Below are positions 24 to 64,000 of a stretch of DNA of 64,000 nucleotides, piece by piece. The stretch lies in the sequence record OR228459.1; one strand, given 5' to 3'. Made by a program: the position numbers and the translations under genes. The notes under the pieces are model-generated. The model was not told where the DNA came from. It did not search any database and saw only the letters and a list, made by a program, of their open reading frames with translations. Position 1 is the stretch's first letter, and every line of letters begins with the position of its first letter.

Positions 24-83
24 GAAAAGTACTAAAAAGTACTACACACCTTTTTTACAAAGTACCATTCAACCTTTTTCCCG

Positions 84-172
84 AAAGTACTCCATCCTAA
101 ATCCCAATCCTAGAAATTTTGGAGTACCCTCCAACCTCCAGCTAAAATCTCAAAAGTACTCCATCCTAAATC
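84..172. repeat. 20-bp direct repeat AAAGTACTCCATCCTAAATC (84-103, 153-172)
   Basis: Two identical copies 69 bp apart in a C-rich non-coding end region. Confidence 0.85.
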
Positions 173-188
173 TGAATCAACAAAATGC

Positions 189-217
189 TGGACAACCATT
201 CAGTACTAAATTATAAT
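189..217 (+). promoter_or_regulatory. sigma70-like promoter
   Basis: TGGACA-17-TATAAT, with AGTACT in the spacer. Confidence 0.55.
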
Positions 218-250
218 GTTATTAGTGGGAATCTACCCTCGTATATATGA

Positions 251-288
251 TGCTGTATATAATATCAGTACTGAACGAATTAACAGTA
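251..288. promoter_or_regulatory. Two overlapping LexA (SOS) boxes
   Basis: tgCTGTATATAATATCAGta (251-270) and taCTGAACGAATTAACAGta (269-288); both fit CTG-N10-CAG. Confidence 0.7.
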
Positions 289-483
289 TTAGTAGATATA
301 CCAGTACTGAAAATATTTTGAAAATAGTTGTTGACACCGTGGGAATATTTTGACATAATACACGGCATGGAAGATGTGGTGAGTTATCATCCTGACTTCT
401 GTCTTGTTTATGAAAATAGATTGAAACAGTACTAACACGTTTATAACAACGTAACAGTACTGATATGAAGTGAAAAGTATTAC

Positions 484-503
484 CCACCAGCTTAAGCTGG
501 TGG
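484..503. other. Perfect palindrome of two inverted Chi sites
   Basis: CCACCAGC-TTAA-GCTGGTGG. Confidence 0.85.
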
Positions 504-686
504 ATGTGGTTAGAATAATAAGAAGGGGAATCCCCAATCATACGATGAACTATATTCAATTCTACCAGTACTGCGAATAGTTACTCCACAAGAATGAGAA
601 GACTGTTGTAGTACTGAACTTTTTATGACGAGAAAATTTGAATAGATTTTGGGTGTACTTATCCTGTACTCTGGACGGATTAAGGG

Positions 687-794
687 CGTGTTTGATTCTC
701 ATTCGCATATAAGAATGATAAACTTTCTCAACATGAGAATGGTTCTCAGTTGCAAATAAGAATAGTTCTCAAATGAGAATAATAATGATTATCG
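687..794. promoter_or_regulatory. Array of about 5 Fur-box-like 7-1-7 inverted repeats, ~23-bp period
   Basis: TGAGAAT-g-GTTCTCA (734-748), TAAGAAT-a-GTTCTCA (757-771), TAATAAT-g-ATTATCG (780-794); partial units at 687 and 710. Confidence 0.7.
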
Positions 795-945
795 TTTTCA
801 GTACTAGACTAATTTTTCCATTGGCTAGCCTACCGCGACGGAATATAATATTCCGGCAGTATCACGAATCAGCTTGTTTTAAATCTGCCGTTATTATCTC
901 AATATCTGGGTAGAATGTCAAGCTAATATTTTAAAAAATAAATGC

Positions 946-974
946 TTGACACGTTGGCAGTACTTTGCTATTAT
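946..974 (+). promoter_or_regulatory. sigma70 promoter of non-coding unit 1, divergent from a minus-strand promoter at about 893-921
   Basis: TTGACA-17-TATTAT; the minus-strand partner reads TTGACA-17-GATAAT. Confidence 0.75.
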
Positions 975-979
975 ATACA

Positions 980-1040
980 CATAGCAAGAACAATGCTCAA
1001 GCCCACAGGGTGCGGAGGTGTATTCGTTAAAAGCTAAATG
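980..1040 (+). ncRNA. Putative small RNA, ACCC-N-GGGTGC family, copy 1
   Basis: Core GCCCACAGGGTGC at 1001-1013; own promoter; no ORF follows; ends approximate. Confidence 0.5.
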
Positions 1041-1056
1041 CGAATGATTATCATTT
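1036..1056. promoter_or_regulatory. Fur box between convergent copies 1 and 2
   Basis: aaaTGCGAAT-g-ATTATCAttt. Confidence 0.65.
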
Positions 1057-1111
1057 CGCTCATATGATACATTTCCGCACCCTCTAGGGTCTCCGCTTTC
1101 TCGCGTCTATA
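1055..1111 (-). ncRNA. Putative small RNA family copy 2
   Basis: Promoter TTGACG(1145-1140)-17-TATAAT(1122-1117); core ACCCTAGAGGGTGC at 1090-1077; ends approximate. Confidence 0.5.
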
Positions 1112-1295
1112 TAGTAATTATACGGTAATGCGGTTTATGCGTCAAGTACTTTTTTAAAGAAAATCGAAAATAATTTAGTACTATATGTATATAAGGAAGG
1201 AAAAAGAATTTTCAAAAAGTACTTGCATTCTAATTTAACCTATTGCATAATAGCTACATCGAAACGAGATACACAAACACATTAAGGAAAACGAT

Positions 1296-1529
1296 ATGAT
1301 TCGCATTGTTCGCATTAATTACTCTACCGGTGAAGCTGATAAAGTAGCGGTTATTGTATCAGAAAAGAATGATGATCATCTACACAATACGCTGATGCGT
1401 TTTGTTAGTGCGGTTGACCGTTGGGCTAGTATTGAGTACTTAGAAACGTTTAAAGTCCCTGCCGTCCAGCTTAACGGGCATGATATTAAAGCAATTTGGA
1501 ATGCTGACGAAATGATCGCGAACATGTAA
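1296..1529 (+). CDS. Hypothetical early protein
   Basis: ORF with TAAGGA RBS and upstream promoter. Confidence 0.8.
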   Translation: MIRIVRINYSTGEADKVAVIVSEKNDDHLHNTLMRFVSAVDRWASIEYLETFKVPAVQLNGHDIKAIWNADEMIANM

Positions 1530-1620
1530 TTATTTCAAGTACTATCAAAATTTACTTGACTTACTTTGATAGTACTTTATAATACTTACATACAAACGAA
1601 GTACTATTAAGGAAAGCATT

Positions 1621-1752
1621 ATGATCACTATCGAGAAAATCCGTTTAGCAGTAGAAGAACTGATCGCGGCTGGCTGGATTGTCGCAGAAAGTGAAGAAGA
1701 AATTAACATTGTAGTAAATGGTATGTATTCAGTTATGACAAACGTGGAGTAA
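1621..1752 (+). CDS. Hypothetical protein (43 aa, MITIEKIRLAVEEL...)
   Basis: Read by hand; TAAGGA RBS and promoter cassette. Confidence 0.75.
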   Translation: MITIEKIRLAVEELIAAGWIVAESEEEINIVVNGMYSVMTNVE

Positions 1753-1834
1753 GTTAGTATTAAAAGTACTTGCATTTACTTAGCGAGTACTTTATAATAC
1801 TTACATACAAACGAAACACTATTAAGGAAATATC

Positions 1835-2452
1835 ATGGAAAACATTATCGACGTTATCAAGTCTGTTTCTTATGCTGATCTGAATGAAGCACAAAAAGAA
1901 AAAGCTATTGAGATCATGCGAGAGTTAGAGAATCAAGAAATGACTCCGTTTTGGTCTGTAGATATTACTGATCAATGGAAAGAAACTTTAGACACTGAAT
2001 ACGGCATTACTGATGCAGTGATTTATTGGTCTGGTTTTTGTTCACAAGGTGACGGTGCATCGATTAGTACTGAATACTATATTGATATTGAGAAGTTTTT
2101 ACGTAAATGTAAAGCGTGGTCAAAATTCCGTGTACTGCACAAAATTATTGACCGTGAAGAAATTCATGCTAAGATTGATCGTAGCTCAAGCCGTTACAAT
2201 CATGAAAACACTGTAAGCGGTAGCGTAGAGCTTGATTATAACATTGATTGGACGGCGAAGCAGGAAAGCGAAGCTGAACGCTTAGAAGAATTTTTGACCG
2301 AAACTATTCGCGAACTTTCTTGTAAGCTGTATAAAGAACTTGATAATGAGAATGATTATCAAAACAGCGATGATGCCCTTTGGTCTACCATTGAAGCAAA
2401 TGAATATGATTTTGCTGTAAACTCAAACGGCGACGTTTTGCGTATCGCCTAA
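1835..2452 (+). CDS. Acidic hypothetical phage protein (YWSGFCSQGDGAS motif)
   Basis: ORF, RBS, promoter; motif recalled from other phage hypothetical proteins. Confidence 0.8.
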   Translation: MENIIDVIKSVSYADLNEAQKEKAIEIMRELENQEMTPFWSVDITDQWKETLDTEYGITDAVIYWSGFCSQGDGASISTEYYIDIEKFLRKCKAWSKFRVLHKIIDREEIHAKIDRSSSRYNHENTVSGSVELDYNIDWTAKQESEAERLEEFLTETIRELSCKLYKELDNENDYQNSDDALWSTIEANEYDFAVNSNGDVLRIA

Positions 2453-2557
2453 AGTACTGACATACTGTAAAACGCTCTATAACGCATTGTAGGGCGTTTT
2501 AAGGAATAGCAGTATCATTTATCATCTTAATTAATTAAACGGCGTAGACGGCGATTT

Positions 2558-2728
2558 ATGAGCAAACAAGATATATTGAAAGGGGATGTTTTATACTGGT
2601 TAGATCCTGATGATGGGATCTGTTCTGGATGGGTAACAGTATTAGACGTTAATACTACAGTACTGGTAAAAGGTGCAACGGCAGAATTTGAAGTGCTACC
2701 CGAAGAACTTTATTCGCATGAAGTTTAA
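2558..2728 (+). CDS. Hypothetical protein (56 aa, MSKQDILKGDVLYWLDPDDG...)
   Basis: Read by hand; fills the gap before the next promoter. Confidence 0.65.
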   Translation: MSKQDILKGDVLYWLDPDDGICSGWVTVLDVNTTVLVKGATAEFEVLPEELYSHEV

Positions 2729-2757
2729 AAAGTACTTGCAAAGTAAATCTAAAAGCG

Positions 2758-2812
2758 TATAATGATTTGCATAGGGGGAAACATCTTCCCCCCACTATTA
2801 AGAGAAACGATT
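2758..2812 (+). repeat. Repeated promoter/5'-stem-loop/RBS cassette (PeSL-like), 10 copies
   Basis: TATAAT-gRtttgc-ata-GGGGGAAacatcTTCCCCC...TAAG(G)A; -10 boxes at 2758, 4715, 5069, 5834, 7903, 9429, 10584, 17305, 18160, 18857. Confidence 0.9.
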
Positions 2813-3253
2813 ATGACTATCTACTATCTGACTTATAAAACCGCCGACAATGTAACTGATGCTAATGTGACCGCAAACACGGTACAGGAAGCAATGGAAG
2901 TACTGAAAGCGGAACTACCTGATATTCAGATCGTTTGTGTAGTTGATACCGAAACGAATCTTAAAACTATTATTGACCACTATGATTATTTCCGTGGGCG
3001 TAAGTTACAGGACTGGTATCATATCGAAATAGAAACACGTGAACTACCAGAAGAACAACAGCACTTTGAGCAGGGTACTAGCATTTGGGTTACTACCGAT
3101 AAACGCATATATTTCTGTTCACGCATACACGTTAACAAGCGTGTTAAAATTGGGGCAGATTCATATAGTGGACTGTTTACAAATAGTAACCTACTAAATG
3201 ACAAGTACATAAAAGTTTATGAGCGTTTTGGAACTGATATTTACGCTTCATAA
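2813..3253 (+). CDS. Hypothetical early protein
   Basis: Start moved to the ATG after the cassette RBS. Confidence 0.8.
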   Translation: MTIYYLTYKTADNVTDANVTANTVQEAMEVLKAELPDIQIVCVVDTETNLKTIIDHYDYFRGRKLQDWYHIEIETRELPEEQQHFEQGTSIWVTTDKRIYFCSRIHVNKRVKIGADSYSGLFTNSNLLNDKYIKVYERFGTDIYAS

Positions 3254-3258
3254 TATCA

Positions 3259-3290
3259 CAAAGGGGAAGCAATTGCTTCCCTGTTTATTT
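3259..3290. terminator. Bidirectional intrinsic terminator
   Basis: GGGAAGC-AATT-GCTTCCC flanked by A and T tracts. Confidence 0.75.
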
Positions 3291-3350
3291 GTACAGTACT
3301 ATAATCTATAGATACAATACCGCACCCCGTGGGCTAATGTGTTTTCATGG
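3259..3350 (-). ncRNA. Putative small RNA family copy 3, about 90 nt
   Basis: TTGACA(3384-3379)-17-CATAAT(3361-3356); core at 3336-3322; ends at bidirectional hairpin 3259-3290; near-duplicate of copy 7. Confidence 0.6.
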
Positions 3351-3782
3351 GTATTATTATGCCAGTACTACAAACATTTGTCAATCATTATTTTCAATTA
3401 ATTTAAACGCACTGTAACACTGTATAAGGCGTTTTGTTATTAAGGTAAGCAAACGTATTGAGTACTATCTAAAAGGCCGTTGTGGGCTTGCTGGTGGCGT
3501 TGTGTTGTAGTATTGAAATATAAGGAAAATATAAAAAAGGCTGTCAATGATTAAAAAAGTACTTGACGGATTGATTTAGTACTGTCATAATGTATCACAT
3601 AGAGCGGCGGGATGGATAAACATTCCTAAGTAGACAGCCAGTAAGTCATACGAAAGACTGGTGCCGAACTGAAAGAAAGATTGAAAAGAGTTTTAAAAAG
3701 TACTTGACAAGCTGGTGGGAAATTGAGATAATGACCCCGTAGACAGCAAACAACCTAATTAAACTTTAAGAGGAAATATACA

Positions 3783-4370
3783 ATGACTACTACTACTGAA
3801 AATGCACGTGTTACCCTGAAATCTGCACTGGAAGCTGGCGACGTTAAAACCCTTGCTGTTATCCTTGCGAAAGTTGGTCATGATAAAGACGGCGTATCTA
3901 AATTGGGCTTGACTTTCTCACTGGCGGTTAAGGAAGCGAAGGAAGTACTTAAAGAGCAAGCCAAAGCAGCAGAAGAAGCTGCACGTCAGGCAGCAGAACG
4001 CCGCGAAGCTAAAAAGGCTGCACGTCAAGCCGAAGAAGAAAAGCGTCAGGCTGAGATCAAGGCAGAAAAAGAAAATATGCTCAAGTTCCTCATGGATACG
4101 GTTAACGGTATGGGCTTAGACCTTGAGGCGGCAGAAGCGGCAGCAGAAGCGGCAATTGTTAAAAAGTACGGCGATGTTAACAAAGTACCTAAGTATACTT
4201 TTAACCGTGTAGCGGTGATTGTAGACGGTAAAGAATACAACATGCCAACTTCTGGGAACATGGTAGAAGTACTTAAAAATGCACTTGAAGCAAGCGGTAA
4301 ATCGCGTAAAGAGTTTATCATCGAACACGCGAAAGACAAGGCAGAAGCGGAAGCGGCATTCGCTGAATAA
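3783..4370 (+). CDS. H-NS/StpA-like protein with altered DNA-binding loop
   Basis: Coiled coil (ERREAKKAA vs H-NS ERREEESAA); C-terminus PKY...G-NMVEVLKNALEASGKSRKEFII vs H-NS AKY...[23 protein letters not shown]; two tandem promoters. Confidence 0.6.
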   Translation: MTTTTENARVTLKSALEAGDVKTLAVILAKVGHDKDGVSKLGLTFSLAVKEAKEVLKEQAKAAEEAARQAAERREAKKAARQAEEEKRQAEIKAEKENMLKFLMDTVNGMGLDLEAAEAAAEAAIVKKYGDVNKVPKYTFNRVAVIVDGKEYNMPTSGNMVEVLKNALEASGKSRKEFIIEHAKDKAEAEAAFAE

Positions 4371-4387
4371 TAACAGTACTAAACTAT

Positions 4388-4414
4388 AGGCGGCCTAAGT
4401 GGTCGCCTTTTTTT
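4388..4414 (+). terminator. Intrinsic terminator
   Basis: AGGCGGCC-taagt-GGTCGCCT plus T tract. Confidence 0.8.
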
Positions 4415-4428
4415 AATTGGGGGATTAT

Positions 4429-4689
4429 ATGGCTGTAGGATTCGCGAAAGACGGGGCAGAACAAGACGAGATTTTAGCGGTCATAAACGCCGCTGTAAGC
4501 CACGCAAGGAATCAGATAGGGGATAGTACTATTACAAGTAGAACGCACTGCCTAGACTGTTCTAGGACTATTCCTGAGCGTAGACGGGAAGTAGTAAAGG
4601 GTGTTAAGTACTGCGTAGAGTGTCAGGCTGATCATGATAGTATATTTAAAAGAGATCCGCGTAATTGTTGGCACAGATCTATGAGATAG
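4429..4689 (+). CDS. TraR/DksA C4-type zinc finger protein (YbiI-like)
   Basis: MAVGFAKDGAEQDEI...CLDC..IPERRREVVKGVKYCVEC. Confidence 0.85.
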   Translation: MAVGFAKDGAEQDEILAVINAAVSHARNQIGDSTITSRTHCLDCSRTIPERRREVVKGVKYCVECQADHDSIFKRDPRNCWHRSMR

Positions 4690-4770
4690 TACTTGACATA
4701 CTTTCTGATTAAAGTATAATGATTTGCATAGAGGGAAACATCTTCCTTCACTAATTAAGGAAATAGAATC

Positions 4771-5043
4771 ATGCGTACACCAATGACCCGCGAAGAAATA
4801 CACACAGTACTGACAACTAACATTCAGGACTGGAAGAAATACGCAGATATTAACGAAGCTCAAGACTTGAACAATGAGCTAGATGGTGAAGATCTGGACG
4901 TAATTTGTTCCCCTGAGTTTTATGATGATATTCATTCCGATGATGATGTTTGGAATGTACTGGAAAAGCATTTCCTCGATACTGATTTAAGTATCTACTC
5001 GCGTGATACTTTTATTTTAATTCACAACATTTATAACAAATAA
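4771..5043 (+). CDS. Acidic hypothetical protein
   Basis: ORF after cassette; D/E-rich. Confidence 0.8.
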   Translation: MRTPMTREEIHTVLTTNIQDWKKYADINEAQDLNNELDGEDLDVICSPEFYDDIHSDDDVWNVLEKHFLDTDLSIYSRDTFILIHNIYNK

Positions 5044-5122
5044 TTGTTGACTTACTTATATAGTACTGTATAATGGTTTGCATAGGGGGAAACATCTTCC
5101 CCCATCAATTAAGGAAAAGAAA

Positions 5123-5332
5123 ATGACTCGATACACTGTAGAAGTACGTACTACTAAAAACATTGCTACTGATGTGATTCGTTATTATAAGATGGTTTGT
5201 GGTGTTGCTCGCCGTATTAGTAAAGCGGATTATGACAAGCTGGATCGCGAAGCTGATGGTATGGATTGTTTTTATACAGTAAACACAAAAACGCATACAA
5301 AGCAATTTAAAACATTGTCTTATTACATGTAA
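5123..5332 (+). CDS. Hypothetical protein
   Basis: Start after cassette RBS. Confidence 0.75.
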   Translation: MTRYTVEVRTTKNIATDVIRYYKMVCGVARRISKADYDKLDREADGMDCFYTVNTKTHTKQFKTLSYYM

Positions 5333-5415
5333 AAAGTTTTACTCCAGTACTTGACAATAGATGCGAGTACTGGCATAATAACTTTATTGAAACGAAATAC
5401 TATTAAGGAAATATC

Positions 5416-5805
5416 ATGGCTAATCTCATTGTTCGATTGTATGAAGATTGTTTCTACTTTTAGTATTGTGGGAAACCTATATCCGTTAAAGAGATGATCG
5501 CATCGGGCTATATGTTATCTAAGCATGATCACACTGGATTCATGGCTGAAATGGTTGCGGCTAGTTATAAGTTTGGTGAAGAATGGGAAGCACAATATTT
5601 TCCGGCTGTCAATGCAATGATTAAGCGGTTGGCAGAACACACTGAGTTTATGGAATTTTGGACTGTTTTAAAAATGGTTGACGTGAATCAGAATGGGGAA
5701 ACGTGTCAGCCATACGCACATTTTGACGCTGGGGAAGATATTAGCACAATTTGGAAATGGTTGGAAGATAAATTTACAACAATTAAAATTGCAGATTACT
5801 TGTAA
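5416..5805 (+). pseudogene. ORF interrupted by in-frame TAG at codon 16 (5461-5463)
   Basis: RBS-backed ATG 5416 is in frame with ORF 5494-5805: MANLIVRLYEDCFYF*YCGKPISVKEM... Confidence 0.65.
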
Positions 5806-5889
5806 AAGTACTTGCATTACTATCTGAAAAGCGTATAATGGTTTGCATAGGGGGAAACATCTTCCCCCACTAACTAAGAGAAGAATATC

Positions 5890-6270
5890 ATGGCTAATCA
5901 AATCACTCCAGCACAGACCTTCAATAAATTCAGTACTGAAATCGTATTGAAAGAGTATGTGCCAGATTATGGTTGGACTGATGCATGTGTATGCACTGAT
6001 GTAGCAGATGCAAAGCAACGCATTAAAGATTATCGTGCGGAGGGTTTACAGGTTAAAACTGCCCGTCGCCGTGTACTTAACAAAGATGCTTTCTTATGTC
6101 AAGCTCTTTTAAACTTCTGCCGTGACTACTATCGCCGTACTGGTGGATTATGGCCTAATGAGGTTGAAGTACTGAAATCTAACGGTAAAGTAAAATTTAC
6201 CTTGACTTTAAAAGAAATTGAGGAAGTACTTGGTGATGATTGTTTTTTAGTAACTTCACAGCCAGCATAA
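5890..6270 (+). CDS. Hypothetical protein
   Basis: ORF after cassette. Confidence 0.8.
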   Translation: MANQITPAQTFNKFSTEIVLKEYVPDYGWTDACVCTDVADAKQRIKDYRAEGLQVKTARRRVLNKDAFLCQALLNFCRDYYRRTGGLWPNEVEVLKSNGKVKFTLTLKEIEEVLGDDCFLVTSQPA

Positions 6271-6339
6271 AAAAGTACTTGACACATAACGGGGATATGA
6301 TACAATATCCCCATATTGAAAAGTAATGGAAGTACTGAA

Positions 6340-6531
6340 ATGAATTATCAAAAGGTTAGCAAGCGAGTAGTTGAACTCTCTAAGAAAGCACGTAAAGAGT
6401 ATACCTTAGAACGTTCAATTAACAACTATCATTTAAAGCAAGGTGATAAGTTTATTGTTATTGACGAACCTTTGGAAATCGTGTATATTGTAGTTAATGC
6501 GATGATTCGTGATAAAACGAGGATTAAGTAA
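6340..6531 (+). CDS. Hypothetical protein
   Basis: ATG after GGAAG; promoter upstream. Confidence 0.7.
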   Translation: MNYQKVSKRVVELSKKARKEYTLERSINNYHLKQGDKFIVIDEPLEIVYIVVNAMIRDKTRIK

Positions 6532-6786
6532 ATGCGTACATTAGACCAACTTATTGACCCTAATACGTCAGCACGTCGATCAATGGTTACTATCGGCGGT
6601 AATGGTAAACAACACTGGAGTGGTTACATTTGCTTTATTGTTGGTGGAAAAATGTATGAGCGGGTAGTATATCACAAAGAGATTAATTATATACTATTCC
6701 GTAAAGAAGTCATAGCAGTCGATCCTACCGCCCTAAAACCGATTGCAGGGGCATGGAACAAAGAATCGCTGTACCTTACAGCTTAA
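6532..6786 (+). CDS. Hypothetical protein
   Basis: Translationally coupled ORF. Confidence 0.75.
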   Translation: MRTLDQLIDPNTSARRSMVTIGGNGKQHWSGYICFIVGGKMYERVVYHKEINYILFRKEVIAVDPTALKPIAGAWNKESLYLTA

Positions 6787-6835
6787 CCAATAAAAGGCCG
6801 CTACGTGCGGCCTATCGCGTTCTAGAGGGTATATT

Positions 6836-7024
6836 ATGAATACTGTACAAGTACTAGATGAGATTGAAAAAATTGTTGACAGTACTAACAAACGTGATAT
6901 ACTGTTATCAAGAAATAAGGCTAACCAGTACGAAAAGAATTGCGTACAATCTGCACTAGGGGGTAACTTTGAATCGCTACACTCAACCATACTTCAAGGG
7001 AATAACAACCGCCCACCAGCGTAA
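6836..7024 (+). CDS. Hypothetical protein
   Basis: GAGGG RBS. Confidence 0.6.
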   Translation: MNTVQVLDEIEKIVDSTNKRDILLSRNKANQYEKNCVQSALGGNFESLHSTILQGNNNRPPA

Positions 7025-7226
7025 AAAGAAACTACACATAGTACAGAAACGAAAGCGTAAAGTACTTAAACTTAAACCAACATATAGTTGGGGATTGTCG
7101 TGGGATGAAATCAATCACGGACTATCATGGAATCAATTATATGTTATTGGCTCAAGTGTTGGACGCTTTCATTTTAGTACTATATCACGACAAGAAACAC
7201 GTGTAAACCCATATAAAAGTACTTGA
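6969..7226 (+). CDS. Basic hypothetical protein
   Basis: TTG start with AGGGGG upstream; overlaps previous ORF. Confidence 0.45.
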   Translation: MNRYTQPYFKGITTAHQRKKKLHIVQKRKRKVLKLKPTYSWGLSWDEINHGLSWNQLYVIGSSVGRFHFSTISRQETRVNPYKST

Positions 7227-7256
7227 CATATATCCGGCTTAGTGAGATAATACTTA

Positions 7257-7310
7257 CAAGCCGGAGAAACGGCGTGACCCATAGGGTGCGAAGAAGTAAT
7301 CAGTACTTGA
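7257..7310 (+). ncRNA. Putative small RNA family copy 4
   Basis: TTGACA(7223)-17-GATAAT(7246); GCCG-gagaaa-CGGC hairpin, then ACCCATAGGGTGC at 7277-7289; ends approximate. Confidence 0.5.
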
Positions 7311-7325
7311 GAATGATAATCATTT
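7306..7325. promoter_or_regulatory. Fur box between convergent copies 4 and 5
   Basis: TGAGAAT-g-ATAATCAttt. Confidence 0.65.
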
Positions 7326-7373
7326 ACAACACTAGACAGATTTATGCACCCGATGGGTTAGATTGTTTTCATG
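7320..7373 (-). ncRNA. Putative small RNA family copy 5
   Basis: TTGACA(7407-7402)-17-TATTAT(7384-7379); core TAACCCATCGGGTGC at 7360-7346; ends approximate. Confidence 0.5.
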
Positions 7374-7500
7374 CATATATAATATCAAAGTACTGTTATA
7401 GTGTCAAGCATTTTTATTTGATAATTATTTTAAAAAAAGTCTTGCATTACTTTCTGAATAACGTATAATACTTACATCAACCACTGAGAGGAAAGAAACA

Positions 7501-7872
7501 ATGTCTATTAAGCGTATTGTATTTGGTCGCGGTGCAAGTGAAGAAGTAGTACCTGTTGAACTGATCGCGATGTTAAATGAAATGATTCGCCGTGGTGATA
7601 TTAATTTTAGTCCTGATGTAATGCCTTATGCGATTTCGTATGAGGTGCGTAAAAGTCCTAAGTACTGGAAGATTGACCGTGTAGAATTGGACAAAGAAAC
7701 CGGAGAGATTCGCGAGTTTGGGCGTAGTTCTGTTGGTGCTGTAGATTTTGAAGGGAACGTGTTTAAATCTGCCAGCTATAAAGCCGTTGCTAAGGGTATC
7801 CGTGGAAACATCTTTGTTAACAATGGTTTTAGTGCAATTACTGGTGACGGATATATTCGTTATTTAAATTAA
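7501..7872 (+). CDS. Conserved phage hypothetical protein (GNVFKSASYKAVAKGIRGNI motif)
   Basis: Resembles a widespread phage family with a GDxYKxASWKAPAK-like motif. Confidence 0.8.
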   Translation: MSIKRIVFGRGASEEVVPVELIAMLNEMIRRGDINFSPDVMPYAISYEVRKSPKYWKIDRVELDKETGEIREFGRSSVGAVDFEGNVFKSASYKAVAKGIRGNIFVNNGFSAITGDGYIRYLN

Positions 7873-7959
7873 AAAGTACTTGCAAAGTAATCTGATTAGC
7901 GTATAATGTTTTACATAGAGAGGGGAAATAGTTTCCCCTCCATATTAAGGAAAAGTATC

Positions 7960-8196
7960 ATGGCACAGAAAATCACTCGCGATAACGTAGAATTTTACAT
8001 TGATATCCTGAATACTAAACTTGAAAAGATGGGTGCTCCACTACGTTACAAAATGATCCCTGTTGCTGGTGGTTATGAGTTGCAAAAGTACAAGGGTGAT
8101 ATTCAGGTTGATTATTGTGTATCTGGTCAAAAACTCCGTGAAGTTTATGAGATTGTACGTTTTGCAGCTAACATGATTTCGGATAACGTGAAGTAA
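7960..8196 (+). CDS. Hypothetical protein
   Basis: Start after cassette RBS. Confidence 0.8.
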   Translation: MAQKITRDNVEFYIDILNTKLEKMGAPLRYKMIPVAGGYELQKYKGDIQVDYCVSGQKLREVYEIVRFAANMISDNVK

Positions 8197-8276
8197 TTAT
8201 TATCAAAAAGTACTATTGACAGAAACATGATAGTACTTTATAATACTTACATCAATTAAGCAAAGAGGAAAACAAA

Positions 8277-8582
8277 ATGCAAATGTCTAACCTGTATGTA
8301 GCTCACATCACTATGCGTCATGGTGAATATGAAACACTGGTTAAACGTCTGATTATTGCTAAGAGTTTAGCAGAGGCAGAATTATACGCCTATGAAGAAG
8401 GGATGGCAACATTTGACGGTAGCGAATTAGAAGATAAATCCAGCTATCAAGAAGCGGATCAACCTCATACGTGGTATTTCTCAGGCGGGGATTGGTGCGT
8501 TACTCTTAATGCAGTTACATGGATTGAGGATCGCGAAACAGCTAAAGTAATTGCTAAATCTGATTTACTGTCTTATCTGTAA
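8277..8582 (+). CDS. Hypothetical protein
   Basis: ORF, GAGG RBS, promoter. Confidence 0.8.
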   Translation: MQMSNLYVAHITMRHGEYETLVKRLIIAKSLAEAELYAYEEGMATFDGSELEDKSSYQEADQPHTWYFSGGDWCVTLNAVTWIEDRETAKVIAKSDLLSYL

Positions 8583-8649
8583 AAGTACTTGACAACCTTT
8601 CGGGGGTAGGATATACTATCCCCATCAATTAAGCAAAGAGAGAAACAAA

Positions 8650-9060
8650 ATGTTTAAAATTACTAGCGTAGAAAAAAGCGGCGATTCCATGATTGTAAGT
8701 GCTTTCTGGAATGATGCTTGTCAAGTATCTATTAGCTTTAATCAAATGGGCGTAGTACAATCCTGTACTTTCGCAGAGGATACCAAAGAGCGAGCACAAT
8801 TAGAAGATCATGCACGTTCGGTAATTAAATTCAATATTCCTATTGAAATGGAACCTAATATCATTTATACTGATGATCAGGTCGAGCAAATGAAACGTTG
8901 GTATGAATCTTTGATTAAAGCGGAAAAGGTCATTGCAGAAATGGATCAATGTATCGTTGAAGCTGATTGGTTATCTGATATGTTCGGGCAAACATCCGGT
9001 AGCATTATTGATGCCCTGTTTAATGTTCGTGCGGCGTTAGATCCTCGCATCAATCAATAA
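8650..9060 (+). CDS. Hypothetical protein
   Basis: ORF, promoter, terminator downstream. Confidence 0.8.
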   Translation: MFKITSVEKSGDSMIVSAFWNDACQVSISFNQMGVVQSCTFAEDTKERAQLEDHARSVIKFNIPIEMEPNIIYTDDQVEQMKRWYESLIKAEKVIAEMDQCIVEADWLSDMFGQTSGSIIDALFNVRAALDPRINQ

Positions 9061-9063
9061 AGA

Positions 9064-9101
9064 AAAAAGGGGTTGACTTCGGTCGCCCCTTTTGTTATTA
9101 T
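9064..9101 (+). terminator. Fused terminator/promoter element (also at 14032, 14966, 16164, 17132)
   Basis: GGGGTTGAC-TTCG-GTCGCCCC-TTTT; TTGACT in the stem lies 17 bp before TATTAT. Confidence 0.75.
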
Positions 9102-9106
9102 ATAGT

Positions 9107-9165
9107 CATTGGCAGATAAGCTACTAACCCATAGGGTGCAATAGTCTGTCTGTAGTATTTTAGTA
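9107..9165 (+). ncRNA. Putative small RNA family copy 6
   Basis: Core TAACCCATAGGGTGC at 9125-9139; shares CATTGGCAGATAAGC with copy 10; ends approximate. Confidence 0.5.
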
Positions 9166-9237
9166 CTGAAAAATAGTTCTTGCTTTTATGTGCTGGTGGT
9201 GTATAATACTTGTATTGAAACAAACGAGGGTTCAATT

Positions 9238-9399
9238 ATGGAACATGATTTTGATTCATCGGATTTTGAGTTGGCTAGTGATTATGCATGGCATCTTATG
9301 CAAAAAGAAGGTAAATCCGAAACTGATGCATTAATGCAGGCGGCTAACCAATATAATATTAATTACGTATCATTACAAGGATATTGGGATCAAGCATAA
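9238..9399 (+). CDS. Small acidic hypothetical protein
   Basis: GAGGG RBS; promoter with Chi in its spacer. Confidence 0.75.
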   Translation: MEHDFDSSDFELASDYAWHLMQKEGKSETDALMQAANQYNINYVSLQGYWDQA

Positions 9400-9483
9400 A
9401 AAGTACTTGCATTACATATTCAGTACTGTATAATGGTTTGCATAGGGAAAAACAACTTCCCCCACTAATTAAGGAAATGAATT

Positions 9484-9948
9484 ATGAATAGCATCCAGTT
9501 CGTAGAAGCCATTGAAAAAGAATTCCTGTCAGTATTTCCTAACGGTTTCTTTATTGCCCGACCTTTACCGTTGGGCGGTGATGTAGGGATCACTATGGGA
9601 CTGACTCGCGAACAGGCCGATTGTCCTCATAATATCCGTGATAATGATCGTATGCGTATGACCTTCGCGATCCACGGTATGAAGTTTGGGGATAGTGAAG
9701 ATTATAACGACAAGTTAATTATGGAACCGTACTATTCAGCGATTAGCACGATTCCACGCAAGCCATACTACGCTATGGGACACGATAAGATCAAGACACG
9801 CAAAACCACTAACACGCCGGAAAAATTGATTGTAACGCTTTCTAAGTACATTAAAACCGCAGGGCAGCAAGTAAAAGAGCTAGCAGAAGTAAACGAGATT
9901 TATCAGCAGGAACAGATTAAACCTCAGTACTTAGAAATTAACGTGTAA
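9484..9948 (+). CDS. Hypothetical protein
   Basis: ORF after cassette. Confidence 0.85.
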   Translation: MNSIQFVEAIEKEFLSVFPNGFFIARPLPLGGDVGITMGLTREQADCPHNIRDNDRMRMTFAIHGMKFGDSEDYNDKLIMEPYYSAISTIPRKPYYAMGHDKIKTRKTTNTPEKLIVTLSKYIKTAGQQVKELAEVNEIYQQEQIKPQYLEINV

Positions 9949-10016
9949 TTATTATCAAAAGTACTTTACAAATACAGTAGAGTACTTTATAATACTTACA
10001 TCAATTAAGCAAAGAG
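9946..10016 (+). repeat. ~70-bp near-identical promoter module (copies at 9946, 10248, 12128; diverged at 8194)
   Basis: taattattatcaaaAGTACTttacaaatayagtagAGTACTtTATAATacttacatcaaytaagcaa. Confidence 0.9.
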
Positions 10017-10025
10017 GGTTACAAA

Positions 10026-10947: not shown

Positions 10948-10950
10948 TAA

Positions 10951-60830: not shown

Positions 60831-60874
60831 ACACAAAAGGCCGCTTCATGCGGCCTATATTGTTCGAGGTGAAT

Positions 60875-61396
60875 ATGAAACTTAAAGTCTTTACAATGGA
60901 AGAAACTAAACAATTAATTGATGACCTGAATAAGTACTGGAAATTTTGTGCTGAAGTTACTAGTATTGCAAGGTTCCGTATTACTGAGGGTTTTGAATCT
61001 CATGTTCGTGATTACAAATGGGATTGGCGTTCGCCATTCACTCGCCGTGTTAAGTCTGTTGAAGATATGACTTATAAGATTTGTGGTGGACAGTTTCGTA
61101 GTACGTATTATGAATTCATGGAAAGTAAGGGATTTTCCGAATACCTTTCTTGCTGGTTTGGTGATTCAGATCCAAAATATTATTTTGTCCAAAAGCCATA
61201 CAATGATATTGTAGAGGCTGCGGCACGTATTGGTTATTGGAAACAAGAACATATTGCAACATTCCACGAATTACTAGAATTGTATGCCGAACATCCTCTA
61301 GTGCCGGAAGATAAAGATATTGAAATTATCAAGACTGTTCGTTCCCGTCTTGAAATTCTTGAACACATGATGGAAGAATATAATAATGCAATATAA
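60875..61396 (+). CDS. Hypothetical protein
   Basis: GAGG RBS. Confidence 0.75.
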   Translation: MKLKVFTMEETKQLIDDLNKYWKFCAEVTSIARFRITEGFESHVRDYKWDWRSPFTRRVKSVEDMTYKICGGQFRSTYYEFMESKGFSEYLSCWFGDSDPKYYFVQKPYNDIVEAAARIGYWKQEHIATFHELLELYAEHPLVPEDKDIEIIKTVRSRLEILEHMMEEYNNAI

Positions 61397-61910
61397 TTTA
61401 ACAGAAGAACAAAGTACTAAATTCTATGAAGAATTGGTAGATGCAATCGAAACAATCGATACTCTAAATGAACTTGCTATTGATACATTCAATAATTGGC
61501 ATATTCAATACTTGGCTAATCACAAAAGTATTTTTGGATTTAAACCTTATAGTATTGAAAAGTTCGGTAAGAAGATTACAATCGGTAAGGGTATTGAAAT
61601 TGGTCAAAATCAAAAAAGACGTGTAATCTATAATGCTGATGGTTGGGGTGCTAATCTCCGTACTACAAAGATTGCCAAACTAACCGGACGTTCATTCTTG
61701 GATGTATTGGGTGAAGTCAATCTAGTAAGTGCTGCATGTACATCATTTGTTTATAAAAGCTATGAATATGATGAGTGGTGTGAAATCCGTGAAAAAATGG
61801 AAAAATATATGCAAATTCCATATACCATTGATAATGAATGGTTGGAAGTACTCGAAAGTCTACCAACCAAGATGTACTACTATAAACATGTACTAGGGGA
61901 TATTGAATGA
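61386..61910 (+). CDS. Hypothetical protein
   Basis: Coupled ORF. Confidence 0.75.
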   Translation: MQYNLTEEQSTKFYEELVDAIETIDTLNELAIDTFNNWHIQYLANHKSIFGFKPYSIEKFGKKITIGKGIEIGQNQKRRVIYNADGWGANLRTTKIAKLTGRSFLDVLGEVNLVSAACTSFVYKSYEYDEWCEIREKMEKYMQIPYTIDNEWLEVLESLPTKMYYYKHVLGDIE

Positions 61911-62407
61911 TTTTAAAAACATTAACACCTAAACAAACAGGCATTTGGATAAAAAATCTCCAAAAACTATTGTCATTGCGTAATGCCGTTAAAAAGTATC
62001 ATAATTCTGAATATGATCGTGCAGAAAAATTATTCAATGAATCATATGGGTGGTTATATAAGGCATGGCATAGTATTGATGGATATGAAGATTTACATCT
62101 AATGTGGAATGGTACGTATCATGTTCCAATGTCAATGATTTGTAGCCATGTTAAAAAACTTGAAACTGTTCCACCACATATGGTTGAATACAGAAAGCGT
62201 CTTATCTATGAATATCGTGACACCCGCGACACGCTACTAAAACGTTTACAACAGAAATGGGAACGTTATGCCGAGCAACCTTTCCAAATTCAGGAAGGTG
62301 ATTTGGAAATGTATGAGAACTTAAAAGTATGGCATCAAGAACTTAAAAATGTACTCGTAGAGGGGGGCGTATACGATGAAACACTCGACTTGGATGAAGA
62401 TTGCTAA
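61907..62407 (+). CDS. Hypothetical protein
   Basis: Coupled ORF. Confidence 0.75.
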   Translation: MILKTLTPKQTGIWIKNLQKLLSLRNAVKKYHNSEYDRAEKLFNESYGWLYKAWHSIDGYEDLHLMWNGTYHVPMSMICSHVKKLETVPPHMVEYRKRLIYEYRDTRDTLLKRLQQKWERYAEQPFQIQEGDLEMYENLKVWHQELKNVLVEGGVYDETLDLDEDC

Positions 62408-62849
62408 AGATGTAGCTGATGAGAGTAAATGTATCTCTCATCACGTAGGAGCAGTAATTGTACAGAATGATCGCATTGTCAGTACTGGATACAATGGCAC
62501 ACCAACGAAGCAGGTAAATTGTTGTGATGCAAATGCACATTTAGTACACAATGGTGAATTACAAAATTGGGTATCAGATGAAGCTAAAGTAGAACATCAT
62601 AACTGGAGTCTAATGCATGAAATTCATGCTGAAATGAATGCATTGCTTTATAGTTCACCAAAAGACCGTATTGGTGCAACTCTTTACAGTACTCTTCAAC
62701 CATGCTATACTTGTTCTCTATTGATTGCTGGAAGTGGCATTACGAAAGTAATCTACGAGAAAGAATATCCACGTACACCAGAACAAGCGATTAATGTTCT
62801 ACGTAATGCTGGTATTCAAGTTCATAAATTATCAGATTTGGGAGAATAA
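62376..62849 (+). CDS. cd: dCMP deaminase
   Basis: VGAVIV, STGYNG, HAEMNAL, PCYTC. Confidence 0.92.
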   Translation: MKHSTWMKIAKDVADESKCISHHVGAVIVQNDRIVSTGYNGTPTKQVNCCDANAHLVHNGELQNWVSDEAKVEHHNWSLMHEIHAEMNALLYSSPKDRIGATLYSTLQPCYTCSLLIAGSGITKVIYEKEYPRTPEQAINVLRNAGIQVHKLSDLGE

Positions 62850-62852
62850 TAT

Positions 62853-63128
62853 ATGTATCTATTGTTTTCAGTACTTGTTATGATTGGAATATCTTTTGCT
62901 ACATATATTATAATGAAAATTATCAATTATAGCGTAAATGTTGATATGAATGGTAATTCACGTAACTTTAAAGTTCGTTATAATCCATCAAACCATAAGT
63001 ACTACTTAACAAATGCATCACGCTTTGGTGATATTGATGTATGCAGATTTGGCCCATTCTTCCGTGTATATTACAAAAGTAAGATTGATGCTGATTTAGT
63101 AATGCAAAAATTAAATGATTATCAATAA
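62853..63128 (+). CDS. Membrane-anchored hypothetical protein
   Basis: N-terminal hydrophobic helix. Confidence 0.7.
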   Translation: MYLLFSVLVMIGISFATYIIMKIINYSVNVDMNGNSRNFKVRYNPSNHKYYLTNASRFGDIDVCRFGPFFRVYYKSKIDADLVMQKLNDYQ

Positions 63129-63152
63129 AAAGGAGGCCACTTGGCCTCCTTT
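63128..63152. terminator. Bidirectional terminator between convergent genes
   Basis: AAAGGAGGCC-actt-GGCCTCCTTT. Confidence 0.8.
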
Positions 63153-63260
63153 AATGTATACACTAATTAATTGGAAAAAATCTGTATTTCATTAATTATA
63201 TGTTTTTAGAGTAAATTAATATATGTAAAAATTCACCAATATATGAGTATTTTTTATATA

Positions 63261-63935
63261 TTATGATACGGTTACAGCAGCAATAGCTTGTTTTGCACCA
63301 TCAGTAGTTACTACAGTGATATTAGCAGTTCCGGTAGAGATGAATTTCACTAATCCGGTACTACTTATAGTAGCAACTTCAACATTATCCGATTCCCATG
63401 ATACTGATTTATCAGTTGCATTTTCTGGTAATATAGTAGCAACTAATTGTACATCAGGGTCACCGACTGCCCCAGAAACTGTACTTGGTTCAACTGAAAC
63501 ACTTTCAACATTCACAACGGTTGGTTCAGGTGGAACTGCTTCTGTGGTTTGTGCATTATAATCCACTATATCTACTTCTAAACCATTTGACAAAATGATT
63601 TTATGAGTGAAGAATTTGTATGCATAACCAAGTACATCACCAGATTCAAGATCATATACTTTCACGACATATTGATTCTTTCCAATAGATTGTTTAATTT
63701 CTTCCGCAGTAGCTGATAATGGTAGATCTTTGAAATTCTTATCTTTACTAACCATTTTCATGAAAGAATAGATTTTATCAGTTCCTTCATTAACTAGATC
63801 AAAAATACGGGTAGAACGTTCATTAATGATGAATAATTTATCATCAATTGGGTTTGCTTCATTATCTACTGCTGCAAATACATTAATGCCACCTACATTA
63901 AATGGCAATTCTCCAAATTTAGCGATAGGCTTCAT
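63261..63935 (-). CDS. Ig-like (Big_2) domain protein, probably a virion surface protein
   Basis: C-terminal VESVSV...ATILPENATDKSVSWES...VATISSTGLV...GTANITV; AGGAG RBS at MKPIAK. Confidence 0.85.
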   Translation of the reverse strand: MKPIAKFGELPFNVGGINVFAAVDNEANPIDDKLFIINERSTRIFDLVNEGTDKIYSFMKMVSKDKNFKDLPLSATAEEIKQSIGKNQYVVKVYDLESGDVLGYAYKFFTHKIILSNGLEVDIVDYNAQTTEAVPPEPTVVNVESVSVEPSTVSGAVGDPDVQLVATILPENATDKSVSWESDNVEVATISSTGLVKFISTGTANITVVTTDGAKQAIAAVTVS

Positions 63936-64000
63936 TGGCTTTCTCCTATTATTAAAGTACTTTATAATATTTACCAAAAAAGTCTTGACATATGGAACAA

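Follow-up and report, generated by a model that had tools for sequence, protein, structure and literature searches.

The DNA of a whole lineage of giant bacteriophages, the Rak2-like jumbo phages, is filled with the six-letter palindrome AGTACT, at a density about 40 times that in E. coli DNA, and in the early region the word is built into about half of the promoters, while most other such palindromes are purged. This points to a phage-encoded system that marks or reads the word, for which we found no published description. The window analysed here consists of bases 1-64,000 of Klebsiella jumbo phage fENko-Kae01 (OR228459.1).

Enrichment of AGTACT in the window and the genome

The over-representation of AGTACT put forward in the original prediction is real, and all 22 coordinates that it listed for bases 1-2000 are exact. 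The window holds 241 sites, against 18.4 +/- 3.8 (maximum 27) in dinucleotide-preserving shuffles; this is 11.3x the zero-order expectation and makes AGTACT the most over-represented hexamer. The density amounts to 6.2/kb in the 19,736-bp direct terminal repeat (DTR) and 2.7/kb beyond it. Coding DNA has 3.1/kb and the non-coding DNA of the DTR 11.9/kb, but intergenic DNA outside the DTR is not enriched (1.1/kb). The regions concerned are:

28..63961 (unstranded): 241 dispersed AGTACT sites, 177 fully inside genes, 63 fully intergenic and 1 straddling a gene boundary.
1..19736 (+): direct terminal repeat (early-gene region) with 122 sites.
1..772 (unstranded): gene-free terminal DNA with 11 sites, most of them in the extended context (T/A)(A/C)(C/T)CAGTACTGA.

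A codon-aware null, named beforehand as a possible refutation, does not remove the excess: 178 sites were observed against 49.6 +/- 5.7 under within-gene synonymous shuffling (z = 22.6), with all three reading frames 3-4x enriched. The same holds for every 50-kb segment of the rest of the genome (z = 14-19); the genome as a whole carries 819 sites in 340 kb. There is a cost at the level of the proteome, with 115 Ser-Thr dipeptides against 66 expected and 162 Val-Leu dipeptides against 91, and the phage encodes a tRNA-Ser with anticodon ACT, matching the AGT codon. Outside the repeat the spacing of the sites is random, and they are spread evenly along genes. In contrast, 24 of the 64 six-base palindromes, and GCGC, are absent, so that the genome is under heavy restriction selection; a tolerated 6-bp palindrome is therefore most simply one that is protected.

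Density is maintained but positions are not. Compared with phage KP13-7, 6 of 27 sites are conserved, versus 17% for any hexamer, while the densities are 27 and 30 sites in the same 19 kb. Turnover of positions at the neutral rate could suggest that the excess has no function and is a by-product of biased mutation or repair (very-short-patch-like conversion), or of codon and dipeptide usage. This we consider very unlikely, since one-mismatch neighbours of AGTACT are not depleted (1.0-2.8x), the excess survives the synonymous-codon null in all frames, and both the exact, conserved promoter placement and the symmetric flanks in non-coding DNA (see below) speak against it.

Distribution among related phages

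Enrichment of 8-14x was found in six further Rak2-like groups, including two Xanthomonas phages: G17 13.8x, KP13-7 8.2x, CBB 8.4x, GAP32 8.9x, XaC1 10.5x, XbC2 13.4x, and Yen9-04 14.2x. The word and its flank rule (C favoured and G disfavoured at -1) are the same in every lineage. A scan of viral contigs found dispersed enrichment only in Rak2-like contigs. The Pseudomonas relative PA5oct is depleted (0.18x), and T5 (0.73x) and T4 (1.5x; 8 sites vs 5.2 expected) show no enrichment. E. coli DNA, sampled as a stand-in host, contains 6 sites in 100 kb (0.06 sites/kb). The enrichment follows the phage lineage rather than the host, since it is also present in the Xanthomonas phages.

We also considered a host factor of Enterobacterales as the reader, for example SlmA, whose binding site has an AGTACT core. 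The lack of enrichment in the Pseudomonas relative, and the enrichment of host-specific Chi sites in the repeat, would agree with such a factor. However, the enrichment is equally strong in the two Xanthomonas phages, full SlmA-type sites are absent, GAGTACTC is the least-favoured flank (8 vs 26 expected), and T5 and T4, which infect the same hosts, are not enriched. This possibility is largely refuted.

Early promoters and the wider palindrome

The original prediction held that most early promoters carry AGTACT at the -35 and often a second copy just before the -10; about half is nearer to what we found. About 19 DTR promoters read AGTAC|TTG(A/C)(C/A)A, and between 9 and 14 carry a second site 1-2 nt 5' of the -10. 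A site lies within 150 nt upstream of 37 of 50 DTR genes, against 17 of 80 genes outside the DTR. Examples are:

3558..3591 (+): early promoter upstream of ENKO_007 with two sites, AGTACT abutting the -35 (TTGACG) and AGTACT at 3578, 2 nt 5' of the -10 (CATAAT).
5346..5379 (+): early promoter with two sites (5346 abutting TTGACA; 5366 before CATAAT).
9402..9434 (+): early promoter AGTACTTGCAT..AGTACTgTATAAT, sites 20 bp apart; G17 has the same design.
9960..9993 (+): early promoter with two sites 21 bp apart; near-identical copies start at 10262 and 12142.
18830..18862 (+): early promoter AGTACTTGCAT..AGTACTgTATAAT with two sites 20 bp apart.

Both fENko-Kae01 and G17 place sites abutting the -35 and just 5' of the -10, about 20 bp apart, and G17 has a further position about 23 bp upstream. 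The two- or three-site layout is conserved, with site pairs 19-23 bp apart at 4x the background rate in these two phages, although their early regions share almost no sequence. In the unconstrained terminal DNA of two genera (bases 1-772 together with the equivalent region of G17) the half-site is T-T-C|AGT, giving a wider palindrome, TTCAGTACTGAA.

That the word is simply part of the promoter for host RNA polymerase, or for the phage sigma-70-like factor ENKO_467, with intragenic copies being cryptic or spurious, appears very unlikely. The position at the -35 flank is exact in the ca. 19 promoters mentioned, and ENKO_467 is absent from PA5oct. Yet 697 sites outside the DTR have no accompanying -35 or -10, sit in all three frames and are even along genes, intergenic DNA outside the DTR is not enriched, and a palindrome is not what a sigma factor reads.

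Candidate proteins

Of immediate interest are the following genes:

40162..40692 (+): ENKO_087, orphan PF05869 (phage Dam family) adenine methyltransferase, the leading candidate writer of a mark at AGTACT.
39624..40154 (+): ENKO_086, conserved 176-aa protein of unknown function, directly upstream of the methyltransferase in the four lineages checked, absent from PA5oct, and detected in the virion proteome.
40685..41221 (+): ENKO_088, cytidylyltransferase-like neighbour of the methyltransferase, retained in PA5oct and so not linked to the motif.
3783..4370 (+): ENKO_007, early DTR protein with a coiled coil and an H-NS-like C-terminal domain whose invariant loop PTSGNM replaces TGQGRTP, a secondary candidate reader.

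The original prediction named the gene at 40162 as a Dam-family methyltransferase and that at 3783 as an H-NS-like protein. The former is a genuine PF05869 member. Its orthologues were found, in synteny, in every AGTACT-rich lineage tested and are missing from PA5oct, which keeps the neighbouring gene, and no other DNA methyltransferase was detected in fENko-Kae01. RaK2 DNA is reported to be cut only by methylation-insensitive enzymes (PMC3622015). Several observations weigh against the enzyme, however. Its nearest relatives in unrelated phages, PF05869 members at 42-45% identity in Acinetobacter and Staphylococcus phages, are not accompanied by any enriched palindrome, and the characterised members of this family (T1 and VT2 Dam) are GATC-specific. 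Methylation alone gives no reason for enrichment, and a symmetric preference of 10-12 bp is wider than a type II methyltransferase normally needs. The phyletic contrast, moreover, rests on a single AGTACT-poor lineage, which also lacks topoisomerase II, a sigma-70-like factor, endonuclease VII and ENKO_086, and which uses a different anti-restriction strategy, with 7-deazaguanine genes. These other DNA-acting genes show the same presence/absence pattern as the methyltransferase.

We also considered the word as the preferred site of the phage's T4-type topoisomerase II, which is symmetric and cuts with a 4-bp stagger (A|GTAC|T); dense sites would let it act selectively on the 360-kb phage chromosome. 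Both subunits of the enzyme (ENKO_353 and ENKO_354) are absent from PA5oct. Its symmetry and wide footprint fit a hexamer core with weak symmetric flanks, and the DTR encodes a ParE-like domain protein, ENKO_034, of a toxin family that targets host gyrase. Nevertheless this reading is improbable: T4 carries the same enzyme family without enrichment, the consensus sites of type II topoisomerases are degenerate, so that an exact hexamer at 8-14x is not expected, and the fixed positions at the -35 and -10 are left unexplained.

The H-NS-like assignment of ENKO_007 is moderately supported: hhalign against E. coli H-NS gives E = 3e-4 over residues 80-181, and the predicted fold has the topology of the H-NS C-terminal domain. 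In one alternative view the word is purely a protein-binding site, with an early or virion-borne dimeric DNA-binding protein (repressor or nucleoid-type, for example ENKO_007 or an unrecognised small DTR protein) binding TTCAGTACTGAA, shutting off early promoters and coating phage DNA, without any part for methylation. The extended symmetric half-site, the sites about two helical turns apart at fixed promoter positions in two genera, the selection on density with turnover of individual sites, and the conservation of ENKO_007 in several genera, including G17, argue for it. However, the ENKO_007 family is too narrowly distributed, as it was not detected in Alcyoneusvirus or Mimasvirus records, which are also AGTACT-rich, nor beyond three viral contigs. 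The protein lacks the H-NS QGR hook, and H-NS domains read the minor groove with low specificity. No recognisable HTH or RHH repressor was found among the DTR proteins, and a genome this intolerant of palindromes would be exposed to ScaI-type restriction at 819 sites if these were unprotected. We therefore regard this alternative as doubtful, although it ranks next after the explanation given below.

Interpretation

Our preferred, but tentative, explanation is that AGTACT (optimum about TTCAGTACTGAA) is the recognition word of a two-fold-symmetric DNA-recognition system encoded by the Rak2-like lineage, with selection acting on how many copies the genome carries and not on where each one sits. 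In this view the word has two uses. In the early region of the terminal repeat it sits at fixed positions in sigma-70-type promoters, about two helical turns apart, so that occupancy or modification there would gate early transcription. About 820 further copies, one per roughly 415 bp, would mark the whole chromosome as phage DNA. The most likely enzyme acting on the word is ENKO_087, which would make it safe from ScaI-type restriction in a genome that otherwise relies on site avoidance, and would give parental and newly replicated DNA different methylation states. A separate reader protein, as yet unidentified, probably binds the longer palindrome. The enrichment, the selection at the DNA level, the lineage distribution, the promoter geometry, the extended symmetric context and the matching distribution of the methyltransferase are demonstrated by our analysis; that a protein binds and reads the word, that ENKO_087 methylates it, and what the mark is used for, are inferences from sequence alone. 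The earlier interpretation, a genome-wide self-mark that could be the target of a phage methyltransferase or nucleoid protein, letting the phage tell its DNA from host DNA or switch early promoters off, is partly supported.

Comparison with known systems

Chi sites (GCTGGTGG), read by RecBCD in enterobacteria, are likewise a short word several-fold over-represented across a genome, maintained by density rather than position and acting as a self signal for a DNA-processing machine; this phage also carries canonical Chi, enriched in its terminal repeat. Chi, however, is asymmetric and orientation-dependent, occurs about once per 4-5 kb, belongs to the cell and has a known reader, whereas AGTACT is palindromic, about ten times denser, belongs to a virus, also sits in promoters and has no known reader. 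The DNA uptake sequences (DUS/USS) of Neisseria and Haemophilus occur at about one copy per kb, including inside genes, are strong enough to bias coding, and serve as a species-identity tag read by a dedicated protein; they are asymmetric 9-12-mers read at the cell surface for DNA uptake, while here the core is a 6-mer in a phage, with no known transport role. Among dispersed phage operators (cluster A mycobacteriophage stoperators, P1 C1 operators, phiC31 conserved inverted repeats), one phage-encoded regulator has many sites spread over the genome, some overlapping promoters. Those number tens per genome, are 13-17 bp long and mostly intergenic, and have an identified repressor, compared to about 820 mostly intragenic sites here, without an identified repressor. 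In Dam/GATC epigenetic control (IS10 pIN, the P1 pac site, SeqA sequestration) a palindromic methylation site is placed in -35/-10 regions or clustered at a packaging end, so that fully methylated and hemimethylated DNA behave differently, which matches the promoter placement and the terminal cluster found here; GATC, however, is not globally over-represented in those genomes (0.7x here), and methylation at AGTACT remains inferred. Finally, TF1 of Bacillus phage SPO1 is a phage-encoded histone-like protein that prefers phage over host DNA and binds at early promoters, but it tells phage DNA apart by a modified base (hydroxymethyluracil), whereas here the discriminator would be a sequence word, possibly methylated.

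Abundance of AGTACT in the fENko-Kae01 genome

The window corresponds to bases 1-64,000 of Klebsiella phage fENko-Kae01 (OR228459.1, 360,105 bp; 100% identity), of which bases 1-19,736 are the left copy of a direct terminal repeat (DTR) carrying 50 small genes. Almost all genes lie on the + strand. The paper describing this phage does not mention promoters, motifs or methylation. The original prediction, that the 6-bp palindrome AGTACT is massively over-represented, holds, and every coordinate listed for it is correct. The window contains 241 AGTACT sites, whereas dinucleotide-preserving shuffles yield 18.4 +/- 3.8; this amounts to 11.3x the zero-order expectation and makes AGTACT the most over-represented hexamer, the next-ranked words being its own overlaps (CAGTAC, GTACTG, AAGTAC). 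Of these sites 177 lie inside genes (3.1/kb), while the non-coding DNA of the DTR has 11.9/kb. A codon-aware null, which had been named beforehand as the refuting test, does not remove the signal: shuffling synonymous codons within each gene gives 49.6 +/- 5.7 sites against 178 observed (z = 22.6), and all three frames are enriched 3-4x. The pressure distorts the proteins: Ser-Thr occurs 115 times against 66 expected (Thr-Ser 55) and Val-Leu 162 times against 91 (Leu-Val 78), and 56% of the Ser-Thr dipeptides are written AGTACT. The phage also carries a tRNA-Ser with anticodon ACT (A at position 34; fENko-Kae01 268454-268544, or 4454-4544 of genome segment L007), the exact partner of the AGT codon. 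This is unusual for bacteria and fits the motif-driven rise of AGT to 34% of Ser codons. A tRNA-Thr(TGT) and a tRNA-Tyr(GTA) are also encoded.

The over-representation is genome-wide. The unique 340 kb holds 819 sites, 8.6x a first-order Markov expectation, with AGTACT again the top hexamer and a density of 1.5-2.9/kb everywhere, including the late structural genes on both strands. Every 50-kb segment beats the synonymous null (z = 14-19), sites are spread evenly along genes, and spacing outside the DTR is indistinguishable from random (CV 0.95, P = 0.11), so that neither regular spacing nor helical periodicity was found outside promoters. In the same 340 kb (segments L001-L008), 24 of the 64 six-base palindromes have no copy at all and GCGC has 0 copies against 241 expected, whereas TCGCGA and CACGTG are mildly over-represented in the window (2-3x). 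This is a genome under intense restriction-site avoidance that makes one exception. The only clearly AGTACT-poor stretch of the window (0-5 sites per 2 kb) is 19.5-26 kb, the first part of a run of about 26 consecutive genes of similar size (150-215 aa; 19822-34143) with no Pfam match, which may be a more recent acquisition or an expanding paralogue array. Pfam searches of this run and of other window genes were uninformative.

Distribution among related and unrelated genomes

The enrichment belongs to the phage lineage and not to the host, as shown by the comparison of the following genomes.

Table. AGTACT relative to expectation in phage and bacterial genomes.
Genome (group, host): AGTACT versus expectation
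G17 (Asteriusvirus, E. coli): 13.8x
KP13-7 (Alcyoneusvirus, Klebsiella): 8.2x
CBB (Mimasvirus, Pectobacterium): 8.4x
GAP32 (Mimasvirus, Cronobacter): 8.9x
fHe-Yen9-04 (Eneladusvirus, Yersinia): 14.2x
XaC1 (unclassified, Xanthomonas): 10.5x
XbC2 (Mimasvirus, Xanthomonas): 13.4x
PA5oct (Pseudomonas relative, 270 kb): 0.18x (15 vs 83)
T5: 0.73x
T4: 1.5x (8 vs 5.2)
E. coli K-12 (100 kb sampled): 6 sites, 0.06/kb

All seven enriched genomes also have zero GCGC in the region sampled, and the palindrome purge of fENko-Kae01 is seen in all AGTACT-rich relatives (sequences L009-L013 and L137-L139) but not in PA5oct. In the latter, AGTACT is the second most depleted of 2,304 common hexamers. PA5oct encodes GTP cyclohydrolase I, QueD and QueE of the 7-deazaguanine pathway (L141:38449-39724 and L142:47441-48313, both PA5oct sequences) and shows little palindrome avoidance; the two sister lineages therefore seem to use different anti-restriction strategies. 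We considered whether PA5oct has swapped AGTACT for CTGCAG, but the latter is only 2.6x over expectation overall and absent from the PA5oct repeat, and is thus not an equivalent. A partial scan of the viral contig collection for tight triplets of the site found dispersed enrichment only in Rak2-like contigs; every other dense hit was a tandem coding repeat.

A host protein was also considered. The SlmA-binding site is a 12-bp palindrome with an AGTACT core flanked by GTG...CAC, but there are 0 full sites of this type, GT.AG..CT.AC occurs 4 times, and GAGTACTC is found 8 times against 26 expected, so the SlmA-type flank is disfavoured. Together with the Xanthomonas result and the T4 and T5 controls, this makes an enterobacterial host factor unlikely.

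Site turnover and sequence context

In 19 kb of alignment between fENko-Kae01 and KP13-7, at 70% identity, 6 of 27 sites are conserved (22%), the figure for any hexamer being 17%, yet the two genomes keep 27 and 30 sites in that stretch. Density is therefore maintained while individual sites turn over, as with Chi or uptake sequences; the over-representation in coding DNA beyond codon-aware nulls is likewise a property of such genome identity words (Chi, DUS/USS). One-mismatch neighbours are mildly enriched (1.0-2.8x) and not depleted, which argues against a conversion-type drive of the very-short-patch kind.

The word is wider than six bases. All lineages share one flank rule, in which C is favoured at -1 (1.6-3x) and G disfavoured (0.4-0.6x), with the mirror image on the other side. 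In gene-free terminal DNA, where coding does not constrain the flanks (fENko-Kae01 bases 1-760 together with the equivalent G17 region), the half-site is T-T-C|AGT, with C at -1 in 66% of half-sites, T at -2 in 59% and T at -3 in 52%. The optimum is therefore about TTCAGTACTGAA. A conserved, symmetric footprint of 10-12 bp, inferred from sequence alone, points to a single dimeric reader.

Early promoters

In the DTR about 19 sigma-70-type promoters read AGTAC|TTG(A/C)(C/A)A, so that the last T of the word is the first T of the -35. Between 9 and 14 promoters carry a second site 1-2 nt 5' of the -10, examples being:
3558-3591, early promoter with two sites
5346-5379, early promoter with two sites
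9402-9434, early promoter with two sites
9960-9993, early promoter with two sites
18830-18862, early promoter with two sites

Thirty-seven of 50 DTR genes have a site within 150 nt upstream, compared to 17 of 80 genes outside the DTR. The early region of G17 shares almost no nucleotide similarity with that of fENko-Kae01 and still has the same design (AGTACTTGCAA..AGTACTgTATAAT), often with a third site about 23 bp further upstream. In both phages, site pairs 19-23 bp apart are four times more frequent than neighbouring distance classes. Sites about two helical turns apart that overlap the -35 and the spacer are the classic layout of cooperative operators, and this overlap with promoter elements is shared with dispersed phage operator arrays (stoperator or C1-operator type). 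With regard to a cognate repressor, Pfam searches of 47 of the 50 DTR proteins found no HTH or RHH protein or other classic small repressor fold, although small novel folds cannot be excluded. Outside the DTR, intergenic DNA is not enriched (1.1/kb), so the dispersed copies are not promoters.

Candidate DNA methyltransferase ENKO_087

The original prediction named two candidate proteins:
40162-40692, ENKO_087, Dam-family DNA methyltransferase
3783-4370, ENKO_007, H-NS-like protein

ENKO_087 is a bona fide member of the PF05869 phage Dam family (100.7 bits against a cut-off of 28.1, E = 9e-29, model positions 8-150 of 169) and matches the phrog_111 DNA methyltransferase. Hia5-type non-specific methyltransferases were considered as relatives but form a different, larger family, and a sequence search of ENKO_087 against solved structures gave no significant match. 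Its orthologues are found in all AGTACT-rich lineages, with identities of 85% (Hallingskeid), 74% (EJP2), 65-67% (Asteriusvirus), 56-61% (Alcyoneusvirus), 54.5% (XaC1), 44.8% (XbC2) and 43% (Yen9-04). They sit in a conserved block: in the four lineages checked, a gene resembling ENKO_086 lies directly upstream, and a cytidylyltransferase gene is adjacent or lies within about 2 kb downstream. PA5oct keeps the cytidylyltransferase (E = 4e-21) but has neither the methyltransferase (best E = 2.3) nor ENKO_086. No other DNA methyltransferase, of the Yen9-04 g080 type or the T4 Dam type, was detected in fENko-Kae01. A short palindromic word and a co-distributed methyltransferase in the same genome are what would be expected of the target of a type II-like orphan enzyme. 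In addition, a genome this averse to palindromes could hardly carry 819 ScaI-type sites unless they were protected, and RaK2 DNA is reported to be digested only by methylation-insensitive enzymes (PMC3622015). However, methylation alone does not explain enrichment, the footprint is wide for a methyltransferase, and carrying this enzyme family does not go with enrichment in other genomes: Acinetobacter phage Herod and Staphylococcus phage Sazerac, whose enzymes are 42-45% identical, have AGTACT at 0.61x and 0.12x and no enriched palindrome.

ENKO_007 and other candidate proteins

For ENKO_007, no H-NS family was reported by Pfam at E <= 0.01, and sequence searches against solved structures found nothing. 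A family profile aligns residues 80-181 to E. coli H-NS 46-136 with E = 3.2e-4 and a probability of 39% (hhalign). The predicted C-terminal domain (a beta-hairpin, loop and two helices) has the H-NS topology, and the Salmonella H-NS C-terminal domain (2l93) is the second-ranked Foldseek match, with a TM of 0.46 normalised to the target, although this match is not significant (E = 0.73). The conserved Q/RGR minor-groove hook is absent: in 18 of 18 family members the invariant loop PTSGNM replaces TGQGRTP. The family occurs in the DTR of several genera including G17, but was not detected in Alcyoneusvirus or Mimasvirus records or beyond three viral contigs. ENKO_007 is a plausible early DNA-binding or H-NS-interfering protein, but a weak candidate for the universal reader.

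The distribution of ENKO_087 is not unique. Topoisomerase II, a sigma-70-like factor (ENKO_467), endonuclease VII (ENKO_276c) and ENKO_086 are also absent from PA5oct. For ENKO_086, a sequence search against solved structures gave no significant match, and its confident predicted model (pLDDT 92.7) returned only generic beta-hairpin repeat matches, with no nuclease or winged-helix fold.

A lineage-wide word and its possible use

The interpretation in the original prediction, a genome-wide self-mark that could be the target of a phage methyltransferase or nucleoid protein, is supported only in part. Our analysis firmly establishes a lineage-wide word that is maintained by selection with a symmetric extended context, that has a conserved operator-like placement in early promoters, and that shows a roughly 40-fold contrast with the E. 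coli DNA sampled. What we infer from this, and only tentatively, is that a phage-encoded symmetric recognition system uses the word as an early-promoter switch and a chromosome-wide self-mark, with ENKO_087 the most likely enzyme acting on it; the specificity of ENKO_087 for AGTACT, modification of the site in virion DNA, and the existence of a machine that reads the word are all part of this inference, and ENKO_087, ENKO_086, topoisomerase II and ENKO_467 are candidates for the latter by matching distribution only. The main rival, which we consider less likely but possible, is a binding protein (with TTCAGTACTGAA and AAAGTACTTG as the duplexes on which to probe it) without a role for methylation. 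The two are not exclusive.

A more far-reaching reading, speculative and rather unlikely on present evidence, is that Rak2-like jumbo phages tell their own chromosome from that of the host by the density of a sequence word rather than by a hypermodified base. In this view, a phage-encoded writer/reader set (the PF05869 methyltransferase, perhaps with ENKO_086 or another partner) would recognise AGTACT roughly every 400 bp, and would use it to direct or spare DNA transactions such as early-promoter switching between parental and replicated genomes, protection from a host-DNA-degrading or shut-off activity, or selective packaging. This would be a viral counterpart of Chi or DUS.

No paper in the literature searched mentions AGTACT for these phages. 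The closest known phenomena are Chi, DUS/USS, dispersed phage operators and Dam-controlled promoters, relative to which the new element is a very dense palindrome carried by a virus. Rak2-like phages have genomes of about 350 kb, of which most genes and all regulation are unknown, infect Klebsiella, E. coli, Salmonella, Yersinia, Erwinia and Xanthomonas, and are being considered for therapy. A single word that accounts for about 820 sites, shapes codon and dipeptide usage, comes with a matching phage tRNA and is wired into the early promoters is a direct handle on how they time early transcription. It may also show how a phage without hypermodified bases distinguishes self from host DNA, it offers a simple sequence diagnostic for the lineage, and it predicts an easily tested methylation motif for an orphan methyltransferase family whose specificity in these phages is unknown.

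Chi sites and other features of the window

Canonical Chi (GCTGGTGG) is strongly enriched and oriented in the terminal repeat, with 12 copies on the + strand and 2 on the - strand where about 0.1 is expected for each (window positions 484-503, 3490, 3711, 8065, 9192, 11205, 11952, 15834, 16840, 17826, 18721 and 19354). A back-to-back Chi pair (CCACCAGCTTAAGCTGGTGG) lies 0.5 kb from the left end, and several Chi sites sit in promoter spacers. The early region of G17 has 8:0 in the direction of transcription (L009:1-20000), while the repeat of PA5oct has none. This looks like RecBCD protection of the linear ends.

Other features of the window are:
4429-4689, ENKO_008, a DksA/TraR-type zinc-finger protein (E = 3e-8) next to the H-NS-like gene; its gene is the longest stretch of the first 8 kb of the repeat with nucleotide similarity to Asteriusvirus-type E. 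coli phages, it has a homologue in PA5oct, and it is probably an RNA-polymerase secondary-channel modulator
9073-9110, 14039-14075, 16175-16212 and 17142-17178, composite elements in which a GC-rich hairpin (GGGG..TTGACT..tcggtc..CCCC) overlaps the -35 and spacer of a TATTAT promoter; these look like terminator-promoter units between early genes
13328-13579 and 12949-13287, ENKO_034 with a ParE-like toxin domain (E = 1.4e-12) and the gene just upstream, which could be its partner; a possible early gyrase-directed host take-over or toxin-antitoxin pair inside the repeat
14137-14391, ENKO_036 with a NUMOD4 DNA-binding module (E = 2.5e-8); the right-hand repeat copy is annotated as an HNH endonuclease, so this is a homing-endonuclease remnant inside the repeat
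49247-50176, ENKO_106, annotated as a kinase, a T4 Pnk-type polynucleotide kinase/phosphatase (PNKP phosphatase domain, E = 4e-44, plus an AAA_33 kinase domain) that lies next to an RNA ligase, forming an RNA-repair module
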